DNA of 64,000 bases. It comes from Octopus sinensis (taxonomy: Eukaryota). Shown piece by piece: positions 9,219-17,372 of this stretch (position 1 is its first letter; each line of letters begins with the position of its first letter). Both the position numbers and the translations under genes were made by a program. The stretch is from positions 20,088,001 through 20,152,000 of the forward strand of contig NC_043001.1 in NCBI RefSeq assembly GCF_006345805.1. The letters run 5' to 3'. The notes beneath the pieces are model-generated. The model was given only the letters and a program-made list of their open reading frames with translations. It was not told the origin of the DNA and did no database searches.

Positions 9219-10323
9219 GTATCCTTTAATGTAAACGTTGCTGGTTTTAAGGATATTCTTTTTACTTATATATGTTTTAACTTGGCTGGGTTTTTTAAAA
9301 CTTTATTTTGCATTTGTTATTAAATAAGCAATTTTTGTCCTCCTATATGATATCTAGAATTTCAGAAAAGCAGTATTGTACAAGTTACATTGTCTTTATT
9401 GTAGCAACCAAAACGTTCATTTCATGATTGTCAAATCCATGATTGAAATACTGGAAAGAAACAAAGCCTTAAAACTTTAATCTGTAAAGTAATTTCACTG
9501 TCTAAATATTTTCATTACTACATACCATTGTTATTCAGCACTGATGTAATTTCTTAATTCTTCATTATCAAGAATTAATATTTTCTTAAAATTTCGTTTT
9601 AGAAAGTCCTTTACTAATTTGGACAATATTCTAGTGTGTGTGTGTGTGTGTGTGTGTGCGTGTCTTTCTTTCTTTGTATTTTTCATGATTCAGGCACGTG
9701 AAAAGGGCAGTTCTTATGGCAATCAGAGACTGGCAACATTTATGTACATCTGTAATTCTAGATCTGCAGAAGAGCATGGGAAGAAAGGGAATTCCAGAGT
9801 CTAAGAAGGAAGGATTGGGTATTATGACTGGTGTGAGATTAAGAAAGAGAGAGAGATGCTGTATGGGTAGTAAAAAGGGATTAGTGGACATGGATTAAGT
9901 TTTGTGAACAGCTAGCTAGTTCAGAAGAGCAGAAGCTCTTATTGGGATAAAATGTTATAGTGATGTGTATTGATGAGTTAATCAGACAGATGGCCCTCTT
10001 TTGGATACTTTGTAGGATGTGTGTGTGGCAGCAACAACACCTTTGCAGAGGGTGAGAGCAGTATTTTACTGTTAGTCTTAGACTTTATTAAGAGTAAGAG
10101 TTAGCTGATCAAGTATTTCCTGATCTGGGATGCAGTCTTTTGATAAGTTATGTATACGAGATCACCAAAAGGATCATCAGAGATTGTGAAGGATTAGCAC
10201 TTGTAACAACTGTTTAATTGCAAGATTAGAGATTAGAAATGGTGATATTATTCCATGCAGTGGTCATATCTTCATTCTATTTAAGAGACAATTATCATGC
10301 TCCCATTGGGGAATTCTGTTTAA

Positions 10324-10506
10324 CCATTTAGCTTTCAGATTACTCTCTCAAATGAAATACTTATTTATTCACCTTGTTTTGAATTAACAATGTGATTGTC
10401 TTCTTTTTGAATGACATTGTAGGGTATGTGCAAGAGGTTGGACCTGGCCTTTTTGAACATAAAGCACAATATTTGGGCCAGTATATCCAGTTTAAATGCT
10501 AAAGGG
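10324..10506. mobile_element. piggyBac-type MITE
   Basis: TTAA on both flanks (10320-23, 10507-10). TIRs CCATTTAGC / rc CCCTTTAGC. Confidence 0.7.
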
Positions 10507-10854
10507 TTAAGGTAGTGCTGGTTTAACATGATACTTTGGGGTTGATTGTGTGTGGATTGTGGATAACATCTGTGTGTAGAAGATTAAGGAGGACTGAAGA
10601 AAGATTGTTAGAAGTAACAGCAGTCAGGTTAATATACTGAAGGGAAGCTGGACAGTTCAAAGTTGCAGGTTAGAGAGAGCTGTGTGCATACATGTTGCAA
10701 TTGTATAATCAGACAGGAAATGTACATATATACATATTTTCTGATTAGAGTTTTAGAGTTAATTTTTACCCCAACAGCTTGCTTGATCAACCTGAAGAAA
10801 ACAAAAAAAAAGTTTTTTGTTATTTGCATGATGATTTATCCTTAGAGCTTAAGG

Positions 10855-11002
10855 CAGGAGTCTGCAAACTTTTTAGACCATCAACCCCCTGGCATGTACA
10901 AGAAAATAAATAAATGATAATGAAGTAGATGTGCATTTATTGACCCCTTGAGTAGTCCCATCTATCCCCAGGAGTCAATATTGACCATTTTGGAGACCCC
11001 TG
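10855..11002. mobile_element. hAT-type MITE
   Basis: TIRs CAGGAGTCTGCAAA / rc CAGGGGTCTCCAAA. Perfect 8-bp TSD GCTTAAGG (10847-54, 11003-10). Confidence 0.85.
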
Positions 11003-11559
11003 GCTTAAGGTCTTGCAGGTCTCATCCTAGATTTAATGATCATATGTATCTTGGATTATGGAGCTGTTCTTTACTAAGAATCTAAATTTGACAATAAATT
11101 GTTCCCAGCAACTTGTATCTTGACATTTTAATGATAAGTTATAAGGCTATAAACAGGGTTTATAATCTTCTCTCTGCTTTTTTAAAAAAAAATTTTTAAT
11201 AGTTTTTTTTTTTTTTTACTGCATTAATGGTCCTTTGGCATCTGGCTTCCATATCAATGTATTTTGTTTTTTTCTGGTGATCTAAAGCAATATAAGGCTG
11301 ATTTATGTTTTAATGGGATAACTGTTTTTATTTTTATTTTTAGGTTATTCTCATATTCTTTTGATCTATTAGTCTTTATTTTTGTTTGTCTTTCATTGGT
11401 TATTTACTATTTTATCCCTGATTGCCATGGATACTACATCATATGTAATTGGGAAATAGGACCTTATCCTATCACAATGATGTGGCTAATGTCTTCAATT
11501 TTTACATACCTTGTATTCAGCTGTCAGCTGTTAACTTTTGTCTTTTGTTTAAAAGGTTT

Positions 11560-14351: not shown

Positions 14352-15705
14352 TGGTAGCTACAGTTATTTTTCAAGCACTGTGATTAAGTAATACAAATAT
14401 TGTATTTTCTTATACTTCACCATAGTCTCTCTAAATATAAATTAATTTGATATGAAGTTAATTCAAAGGGCAAGTTATTGAAGAAATATTTCTGTGGCAC
14501 ATTGATATGATATTTCACATGTTCATTGAACTATAATCTAGATGTTATTTCCTTTCATTTTAAATTCTAGAAATTGCTTTTTAAACTTTTTTTCATCTTT
14601 CTCTAATACTATTTTGAAAGAATTACGTTTTGGTTTTAATACACCAAATTTTAAATAAAGTGCGGATGTGATCCATGTCTTTCAATAACCAGAAATAAGA
14701 TTGTCTGATCTTTAATGAATAGAAAATTATATTTTCCACTTTCGTTAGTGGATTAATATATTTCATATTTGTTCTAAGTTAGTGTTAGAAGGTATTCTTG
14801 TATAAATCAGGTTTGATAACTGACTGAGGTTTTATCAGTGCAACTTTATAGTTGGGTGGAGATTGTTAATAGGGAACATTTTAAAGTCTTTCGTTGCATG
14901 TAGAGATTGCTTTAAAAAAAATAAAGCCACTTTACAGTTCCTCTTTTTCTGTAAATTCTAAGCTGTTTATATTGAAATTTGAAAAATTGCATATTGTTCA
15001 TCACCATCACCATCATCATTTAATGTCCATTTTCCATGTTGGCATGGGTTGGGACATTTTCACAGGAACTGGTAAACCAGCTGATTGTGTCAATCTCCAC
15101 TTTATAGAGTGTACTGGGTGCTTTTTATGTGGCACCATCACCAGTGCCTATATTAGTATATAAAATTTGTGAGGTTCAACACCTTGAATTCAGCTTTCGC
15201 CACTCCTATCCATATTTTTTTTCCATGCTCTTCCTCTTCCACAGTTTTCTTTCATTTGGGATCTTCTGGCCTTTCTGTACTTCTATTTTATTATCCAAAT
15301 GTAATTTAAAAAACAATTTATTTTTTTATCTCCAAAGACAAGCTTAATATTCATCGTCAACATCATTATTTAGCATCCAAATTCCTGAGTGTAGTGGCTG
15401 CTTTTTCATGTCTCCAGCACTAGTGATGTTGCCAAGTAGCGTGTGAAGCAAGACCATTTGATTTGAGAGATGGAAGTGGCTTTATTCCAAGTATTGAGGG
15501 TCAAGTGTATGATAGAGAGATAGGGACAAGTGTCCTGCCGTAAAGGAGATACATGGCTACCCCACTTAGAAAAAGAGAGATGATGATGATGGTGGTAATA
15601 TGCCAGGGTGTACCTTCAGGATACAAGAGGGTTAATGTGAGTGGGGGATAGAGACTGAGGAATAGGTAGGCATATAATTTCATTAAATCATTTCAAATAT
15701 TTAAA

Positions 15706-15921
15706 CTGTTGTGTCTGGGGAGAGTCATTTTCTTTATCTGCCTAATAATGTAACACACACACCGTTAAAATTTCCTCTTATTTCTTATTTTTATTTTCCT
15801 AAAATTTTCGTTGCTTCTTGCAAACTTTTCAATAGTCTTGACTCTGTCAGTGGAAATTTTACTGGTGAGTGTGTTACATTATAAGGCACAAAAAGAAAAT
15901 GACTCTCCCCAGACACAACAG
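15706..15921. repeat. Fold-back: 70-bp inverted repeat (64/70 identical) with a 76-nt spacer
   Basis: 15706-15775 is the reverse complement of 15852-15921 with 6 mismatches. Confidence 0.9.
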
Positions 15922-16913
15922 AATATGCTTCAACACACGAACTCATATAAAGAATCTTGCAAACCAAATCCAAAAACGAAAAATATTTAAACATTTAATC
16001 TAAAATATTAATAACGACAAATCTATGAATAGATTTTGCCAAGATATTCATCCTTTTGATTAATTCGAATTAAATTATGTACTTGTATTAAATTACTTTG
16101 TCTAGAAACCATCTTATAAGAAGGAATAGAATAAACTACTGTAATCTTTGAAAAAGACTATAAATGCAACAAAGATTGGGAGATGATAGCAGCAACACTA
16201 GCTCAGATCAGAATATTTCTCATAAGAAAATGGATTCCTGTGTCTCTAAGCCTGAATATTTTGCCTTTTGTTTTCTCAACTGATAGCCTGTTTAACCACT
16301 CTCCAGTATTAATAGGTGATTTGTACCATTTAATAGCTTTGTACAACACATGCAATGTTTCTTTATATATACAAATAACATCCACTAAAACTGCTTTTGT
16401 AATGGGACAGTTGAATAAAAACGCTGGCATTTGAAAAGTTAAGGTCACAAAAGTTTGTTTTGCTTGGGTCTGGGGTGGGGAATTGAATAGTTTAACATTT
16501 TAAATATTTTATTTTAGTGTGATTTTAGCTTATTGAGTATTTAACTATATTTACTAGTATTATTACAAGCATTTAAGGTAGTGAGTCAGCAGAGTCATTT
16601 CTCTGCTCCAGACAAAATGTATAGTGTCATATCTTCTGGCTTTACATTCCGAGTTCAAATGCCGCTGAGGTCGACTTTGCCTTTCATCCTTTCAATGTCT
16701 ATAAAATTAGTACTGGGGTTGATGATAATGACTTACTGCAGGCCTTGTGCCAGAATTTGAAATCTTTATTAAAAGCATTTGTATCACCAAAGACTTGGTT
16801 TTAGGATTTAACGTTGCTGTATTTCTTATAATAATGTATTCTCTTTCAGGTCTTTAGCTGTTTTTAAGCGTCAAAGGTTAAAAAATTGAATTTTTCTATT
16901 TATGTCAGAATAT

Positions 16914-16981
16914 GAAGCGGTTGGGAGCTGTGTCAACTATCTGAACCGAAGCGGTTGGGAGCTGTGTCAACTATCTGAACC
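16914..16981. repeat. Perfect tandem duplication, 2 x 34 bp
   Basis: GAAGCGGTTGGGAGCTGTGTCAACTATCTGAACC occurs twice, head to tail. Confidence 0.97.
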
Positions 16982-17372
16982 ATCCTATTGATTGTAGTAC
17001 TTTTGTTTTCCAGCTTAATACCACTAACCATTTATTGCATTTGTTCAAAATTCTTTTGCAAAAAAAAAAAATATATATATAAAGACAATATAACTCAATA
17101 TTAAATGCTTGTGCAAGAAGCAAATATTTTTACGAGAGGTTAGCATTTCTTGATATGCTTAAACATGTTTAAGTGACCCCCGTTAAAATTATATAATCGT
17201 TACATTGCCTTCAAGGAATGCAACGTAAATTAATCCTTTCTTGTTTCAACTGACCATTTGTTGTTGATAGTTATTTTAATCTGCTGTTTTGTATCAATTT
17301 ACTTACTTTTTATTTTTAGATTTAAATATTGTTGACCTATTTTTCTGACTATAAATTTCTTAACTCTGCCAG

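Follow-up and report, generated by a model that had tools for sequence, protein, structure and literature searches.

In this study, we examined the first coding intron of the ADP-ribosylation factor 6 gene (ARF6) of Octopus sinensis, which occupies positions 9219-17372 of a 64,000-nucleotide (nt) stretch of DNA (the window), and relate its splice signals to those of orthologous introns in other lineages. We consider it roughly 93% probable that this is a genuine GT-AG intron of the U12 type, already U12-type in the common ancestor of animals and fungi, which persists in octopus as an ancient relic and is most probably constitutively spliced. The U12 type is assigned because both of its signals are conserved at a homologous codon while the rest of the intron cannot be aligned, and its presence in the animal-fungus ancestor would follow from U12-type introns that share its codon and phase and are found in annelids, an echinoderm, a cnidarian and glomeromycotan fungi. 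The window corresponds to chromosome record CM016863.1 of assembly GCA_006345805.1, with 0 mismatches over the 34,925 nt compared.

Exons were first located by tblastn with ARF6 and then fixed by searching exhaustively for exon chains whose translation equals the protein. This mapping confirmed what a sequence-only reading of the DNA had proposed, namely a phase 1 intron of 8.15 kb at 9219-17372 that splits the codon following GKT. The first coding exon ends GGA AAA ACA A at 9218, the intron opens with GTATCCTTTAAT at 9219, and the divided codon (A|CT) is Thr28, directly after the P-loop GKT. The signals of intron 1 are the following.

9219-17372, + strand: intron 1, 8154 nt, phase 1, GT-AG, U12-type, placed by the exact exon-chain search and by its donor and branch box.
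9219-9227, + strand: U12-type 5′ splice site GTATCCTTT, matching RTATCCTTT at 9/9 positions.
9227-9229, + strand: in-frame TAA met on retention of intron 1 (ACA AGT ATC CTT TAA).
17356-17364, + strand: U12-type branch-site box TTTCTTAAC, matching TTCCTTRAY at 8/9 positions.
17371-17372, + strand: 3′ splice-site AG, preceded by 20 nt that are 65% pyrimidine.

The terminal dinucleotides are thus GT at 9219-9220 and AG at 17371-17372. Against the U1 consensus CAG|GTAAGT the donor scores 5/9, compared with 7/9 for the donors of introns 2 and 3, which had been described as ordinary (GTAAGT and GTATGT) and indeed are. Introns 2 and 3 also have no good branch box (best fit 6/9 to TTCCTTRAY), and the last 20 nt of these introns are 75-80% pyrimidine, as opposed to 65% in intron 1, a modest contrast in the direction expected of a U12-type intron. 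Six nt (TCTGCC) lie between the end of the branch box (17364) and the AG (17371-17372), a spacing that agrees with the sequence-only reading, with the small correction that the branch A itself, at 17362/17363, and the 3′ splice site are 9-10 nt apart. For a U12 branch-site box the expected distance to that site is roughly 8-35 nt and typically 10-15 nt; the octopus value falls at the lower limit of what is usual, still inside it. The lone mismatch of the box is a C-to-U change, at which G-U wobble pairing with U12 small nuclear RNA (snRNA) would remain. We scored the U12 call by consensus matches and by chance rates derived from the window: ATCCTT follows 5 of the 7288 GT dinucleotides of the window (both strands), a TCCTTRAY box with up to one mismatch precedes about 2.6% of its AGs at a distance of 5-22 nt, and the joint chance of both signals at the window's own motif frequencies is about 2e-5 per random intron.

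To place these signals in context, ARF6 loci of other organisms were fetched by exact-protein look-ups and their exons mapped by exact-translation search. The states of the intron orthologous to octopus intron 1 are given below.

Octopus bimaculoides (L002): codon 28, phase 1, U12-type; donor GTATCCTTT, branch box TTTCTTAAC; 7141 nt.
Siboglinid annelid (L003): codon 28, phase 1, U12-type; donor GTATCCTT, branch box TTCCTTGAC (9/9); 616 nt.
Siboglinid annelid (L004): codon 28, phase 1, U12-type; donor GTATCCTT, branch box TTCCTTGAT (9/9); 305 nt.
Apostichopus japonicus, a sea cucumber (L005): codon 28, phase 1, U12-type; donor GTATCCTTT, branch box TTCCTTAAT; 1638 nt.
Exaiptasia, a sea anemone (L007): codon 28, phase 1, U12-type; donor GTATCCTTT, branch box CCTTGAT; 687 nt.
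Two Gigaspora fungi (L014, L015): phase 1, U12-type; donor GTATCCTTT, branch box ATCCTTAAT; 162 and 168 nt.
Trichoplax, two species: codon 28, phase 1, U2-type; donor GTAAAA, no functional branch box; 197 nt.
Capsaspora: codon 28, phase 1, U2-type; donor GTACGT, no branch box; 430 nt.
Sarcophilus harrisii, a marsupial (L011): no intron, continuous coding sequence of 528 nt.
Clavelina lepadiformis, a tunicate (L013): no intron, continuous coding sequence of 528 nt.

In Gigaspora the intron falls at codon 32, owing to a 4-residue N-terminal insertion. Alignment of the donors (A1) showed GTATCCTT to be invariant in 8/8 U12 rows with no conservation past +9, and in the acceptor region only the branch box and the AG align among the U12 orthologues. 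CCTTRAY is found in every U12-bearing orthologue, preceded by T in all but Exaiptasia, and the branch-to-AG distance is 11 nt in the two annelids as well as in Exaiptasia. With a 9/9 donor, an 8/9 branch box and conservation across Mollusca, Annelida, Echinodermata, Cnidaria and glomeromycotan fungi, the U12-type call of the sequence-only reading is borne out. It had also singled out intron position and type for comparison, and across mollusc, annelids and cnidarian we found the same codon and the U12 type, the two chordates sampled (marsupial and tunicate) being intronless.

The remaining lineages indicate how such an intron may be changed or lost. Trichoplax and Capsaspora carry their intron at the same codon and phase (28/1) as octopus, but as a U2-type intron, which is best read as minor-to-major conversion, a change regarded as essentially one-way (Larue and Roy 2023; PMC10639083). 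The positions of octopus introns 2 and 3 (63/0 and 129/1) are likewise shared among the intron-bearing loci, Trichoplax included, and are U2-type throughout; Capsaspora has no intron at 63/0. In Sarcophilus and Clavelina all three coding introns are absent; vertebrate ARF6 is still 95% and the Clavelina protein 81% identical to octopus ARF6. On the simplest history, the three introns were deleted in the vertebrate and tunicate lineages, possibly once in their common stem, and their simultaneous loss suggests a cDNA-mediated event. Taken with the fungal introns, this supports, and extends to fungi, the earlier proposal that the intron is ancestral and lost in vertebrates, the loss being seen in one marsupial and one tunicate. 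Fungi are represented by one genus (Gigaspora). A metagenome scan with the ARF6 protein returned contiguous, transcript-like or intronless ARF loci only, none with GKT-A|GTATCC, and is uninformative on intron states.

Two observations were made on individual orthologues. In intron 1 of Trichoplax sp. H2, a U12 branch box free of mismatches, TTCCTTAAT, stands just 2 nt before the AG (L008/L009, 2260-2279), at which place T. adhaerens has TTCGTTAAT; the H2 box is possibly a decaying remnant, or fossil, of a former U12 intron. The Sarcophilus gene reads LGPDAAGKT where the others read LGLDAAGKT, a single odd residue of the P-loop region in the model of that assembly.

Every exon chain that gives the exact ARF6 protein uses the junction 9218|17373, and this junction alone restores the reading frame and the universally conserved residues. 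For homologous junctions, transcript contigs were taken from public runs. In Apostichopus, transcript contig L006 matches genomic locus L005 at 99% identity as far as 3082 and again from about 4720, and Gigaspora transcript contigs L016 and L019 align to L014 with 99-100% identity; in both organisms the homologous intron is precisely removed. Were the octopus intron retained, translation would run into the TAA at 9227-9229 (tblastn reads GKTSIL up to this stop), so that an unspliced messenger RNA (mRNA) would encode a peptide of 30 residues only and could not make ARF6.

The GenBank model of ARF6 in O. vulgaris (P0068) is chimeric, with 282 residues and a span of 171 kb. It enters the first coding exon through the acceptor 9115/9116 in the wrong frame, reading 5′ untranslated region (5′UTR), and regains the frame by an artificial GT..AG mini-intron of 61 nt (9145-9205), which replaces the true N-terminus. 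Faulty as it is, this model uses 9218|17373, and its peptide over this junction is reproduced from the window.

Several points weigh against the reading of intron 1 as an ancient U12-type intron. The octopus branch box departs from the consensus at one position and stands close to the AG (9-10 nt, the short end), while the branch-to-AG distances of Apostichopus (21 nt) and Gigaspora (22 nt) are at the long end. Use of the octopus junction rests on predicted RefSeq models, protein identity and homology, and the timing of the chordate loss is drawn from one marsupial and one tunicate. The simplest competing view would be that intron 1 is an ordinary U2-type GT-AG intron which resembles a U12-type intron at its ends by chance and is removed by the major spliceosome. 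Both spliceosomes accept GT-AG termini, the 65% pyrimidine of the last 20 nt means that a tract is not wholly lacking, and the + strand of the window has four further copies of GTATCCTT that do not look like splice sites. Nevertheless, we regard this view as hardly credible, given the joint chance of about 2e-5 for such a donor with a correctly placed branch box, the poor fit of the donor to the U1 consensus, and the recurrence of both motifs at the orthologous position in at least five further, deeply separated lineages whose flanking intron sequence is unconserved. The true U2 users at this site, Trichoplax (GTAAAA) and Capsaspora (GTACGT), have visibly different donors. A wrong gene model, in which the real mRNA would use another donor or acceptor and leave 9218|17373 unused, strikes us as just as implausible. 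It could draw on the clearly faulty O. vulgaris GenBank model and on a U2-like GTAAAC at 9230, 11 nt downstream of the donor; yet this site would add 11 nt and bring in the TAA at 9227-9229, and only 9218|17373 restores the conserved frame and sequence. Furthermore, RefSeq models of two octopus species give the exact protein, the faulty O. vulgaris model shares the junction, and the homologous junction is proven by transcripts in sea cucumber and fungus.

The remaining alternatives concern the history and the purpose of the intron rather than its identity. Its position could be ancient and its U12 character independent in animals and Gigaspora, from an opisthokont ancestor with a U2-type intron, as the two earliest-branching holozoan and metazoan samples (Capsaspora and Trichoplax) are both U2-type and the fungal sample is a single genus. 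We think this very improbable, if a shade less so than the two views above: U12 signals are far more informative than U2 signals, a single site is very unlikely to have gained GTATCCTTT as well as TCCTTAAT independently, the TTCCTTAAT box of Trichoplax sp. H2, too close to the AG to function and lost in T. adhaerens, is remnant-like, and conversion runs essentially one way, from minor to major (PMC10639083). More consideration is due to the idea that the intron has been kept as a regulatory throttle, by which ARF6 dosage would respond to minor-spliceosome activity, for example to U6atac levels. Slow splicing of minor introns is established for other genes, the U12 type has been kept for more than 1 billion years in several lineages, and the immediate stop on retention makes unspliced RNA unproductive. 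On the other hand, three lineages have switched the type of the intron or deleted it with an ARF6 protein that is still 80-95% identical, and neutral processes explain most minor-intron evolution in a pan-eukaryotic survey (PMC10639083). For these two reasons we favor a neutral relic, most probably spliced constitutively, over a dedicated switch, and regard the throttle as unlikely. An equally doubtful, broader proposal would place the ARF6 intron among the oldest traceable U12-type introns, U12-type without a break from before animals and fungi separated and overlooked because of its deletion in vertebrates and tunicates, with its retention in most other lineages as selected control of dosage by the minor spliceosome, from which vertebrates and tunicates were released by a cDNA-like loss of all three introns.

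As for the removal of this relic, the steps are taken from the established minor-splicing pathway. The U11/U12 di-snRNP (small nuclear ribonucleoprotein) would recognize two elements jointly, the rigid donor (GUAUCCUUU) and the branch-site motif UUUCUUAAC, after which U4atac/U6atac.U5 would catalyze removal of intron 1, and the AG would be picked by its distance from the branch A, which lies 9-10 nt upstream, rather than by a polypyrimidine tract. Since the intron splits the coding sequence and its retention meets TAA after three codons, every functional octopus ARF6 mRNA would have to pass through the minor spliceosome. The sequence-only reading had made ARF6 output dependent on that machinery, a dependence that would follow logically from the position within the coding sequence and the stop on retention.

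In its features, the octopus intron resembles the GT-AG U12-type introns gathered in U12DB, IAOD, MIDB and by Larue and Roy (2023), which have an RTATCCTT donor and a TCCTTRAY box near the 3′ splice site; in the weakness of its pyrimidine tract the likeness is modest. Also like catalogued members of the class, it is in phase 1, the commonest phase of minor introns (PMC10639083), has U2-type neighbors in the same gene and is deeply conserved in position. It differs from them in that its host gene is outside the human-centered lists, because the vertebrate sampled lacks the intron. In vertebrates and tunicates the coding sequence of the orthologous protein is uninterrupted and its expression, in contrast to that of octopus ARF6, independent of the minor spliceosome. 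O. sinensis was among the species covered by the pan-eukaryotic intronIC survey of Larue and Roy (2023; PMC10639083), which reports conserved minor introns for it and found molluscs to be rich in minor introns and Glomeromycota to have about 200; the octopus ARF6 intron is therefore very probably in the data set of that survey. Nonetheless, our literature searches found no paper joining ARF6 or ADP-ribosylation factor with U12 or minor introns and nothing relevant on minor introns in cephalopods, and a search for ARF6 with intronless gave plant auxin-response-factor papers only. What is already known is the U12 class, its deep conservation, its phase bias and its three fates; what is new is its ARF6 member, previously unremarked.

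Our findings add a deeply conserved U12-type intron for a core GTPase of membrane traffic, common to fungi, cnidarians and bilaterians, and show in one small gene all three fates of a minor intron, namely retention, U2-type conversion and wholesale deletion. The deletion may provide a shared-loss character of tunicates and vertebrates. The intron also explains annotation trouble, the O. vulgaris model being chimeric at this very exon, and in invertebrate models ARF6 would be expected among the genes hit by perturbation of minor splicing. The understanding of how minor introns work is unchanged, and there is no mechanistic surprise.

The gene itself is well defined. Its coding sequence consists of four exons (9137-9218, 17373-17476, 22541-22739 and 24783-24925, + strand), and the spliced product of 175 residues is identical to the RefSeq proteins named ADP-ribosylation factor 6 of O. 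sinensis (XP_029637032) and O. bimaculoides (XP_014769225). The remaining parts of the locus are listed here.

9116-9218, + strand: first coding exon of ARF6 (P-loop exon), with coding part 9137-9218 that includes the first base of Thr28.
17373-17476, + strand: coding exon 2, 104 nt, starting CT ATA TTA.
17477-22540, + strand: intron 2, 5064 nt, phase 0, U2-type, GTAAGT at its start and a pyrimidine tract with CAG at its end.
22541-22739, + strand: coding exon 3, 199 nt, from DVGGQ to NKQD.
22740-24782, + strand: intron 3, 2043 nt, phase 1, U2-type, from GTATGT to TTTCTTACAG.
24783-24925, + strand: last coding exon, ending at the TGA stop.

The octopus translation has the features of ARF6 membership (the MGK myristoylation start, the P-loop-region box and the NKQD box), and a search of the PDB with it scored 385 bits against human ARF6 structures and at most 294 bits against ARF1. 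We take 167 of the 175 positions to agree with human ARF6. As judged from the protein sequence, the gene is ARF6, a class III ARF GTPase, nearer to ARF6 than to ARF1-5 over its full length. A U2-type acceptor, a run of T with CAG at 9113-9115, precedes the first coding exon, and the same acceptor (9115/9116) is present in the O. vulgaris gene model. Conservation between O. sinensis and O. bimaculoides and CpG observed/expected ratios gave no clear candidate for an upstream 5′UTR exon or CpG island within 9 kb. A GC-richer patch at 6300-6750 (about 50% GC) holds an internally repetitive open reading frame (ORF) of 145 residues, with repeated WEPV...HW motifs and no Pfam match; its CpG observed/expected ratio is below 0.45. 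Comparison with O. bimaculoides shows this patch matching itself at several offsets, which makes it a tandem-like repeat and not a promoter CpG island.

Regarding its size, intron 1 had been called long and laden with transposable elements (TEs) for a minor intron. The first description stands in comparison with orthologous introns, of which those outside octopus measure 162-1638 nt, making the 8154 nt of O. sinensis 5-50 times longer; it does not stand in comparison with introns 2 and 3 of the same gene (5064 and 2043 nt), to which intron 1 is proportionate. From species to species, the length of minor introns varies together with that of major ones (PMC10639083), and the 8-kb length reflects generally long octopus introns and no special property. 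The second description is weak: about 555 of the 8154 nt (7%) are copied elsewhere in the window, in two families of short interspersed repeats, but intron 1 contains no ORF above 99 residues, its five longest ORFs have no Pfam match, and these ORF and Pfam scans gave no sign of autonomous TEs in it. The intron also holds one (GT)15 microsatellite and one 34-nt duplication, and its O. bimaculoides counterpart shows 84-92% identity to it, apart from four species-specific indels of 124-380 nt. The repeats within intron 1 are these.

13470-13631: short interspersed repeat, about 165 nt long; the rest of the window has at least 8 further copies, diverged to 69-75% identity.
14978-15083: partial inverted copy of the 165-nt repeat.
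16559-16735: member of a second family of short interspersed repeats (about 70-150 nt), found at least 13 more times in the window.

Rfam and ARAGORN scans of the window returned nothing, so that it contains no snRNA gene by Rfam and neither repeat is tied to a transfer RNA or other RNA family. Copies of the first repeat lie at 6205-6368, 8563-8727, 24266-24429, 33055-33220, 36551-36713, 41444-41605, 46319-46482 and 49981-50143. With at least 10 occurrences in 64 kb, on both strands, this repeat resembles a short interspersed nuclear element (SINE) by length and copy number. Copies of the second include 18255-18339, 38421-38521, 44240-44861 (several), 48616-48687 and 53437-53719, with a cluster at about 44.2-44.9 kb.

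In the window as a whole, the + strand has five copies of GTATCCTT and the − strand none, against about 1.2 expected per strand. Those beyond the ARF6 donor are at 1020, 19421 (within ARF6 intron 2), 40823 and 54495, with no obvious exon context. Five other ORFs of the window yielded a lone sub-threshold PHD match in Pfam, outside the ARF6 gene. At 1510-1920 (+ strand) there is a Cys-rich, PHD-like and TE-like ORF fragment with a sub-threshold Pfam match (E = 0.008). A further TE-like ORF fragment, at 47786-48316 (− strand), is flanked by His/Thr runs derived from (CA)n and ends in WDEVVKHNLRTLGLTEAMTSDRGLWKYAV, a tail that may resemble the ends of ORFs of retrotransposons of the non-LTR (long terminal repeat) kind.

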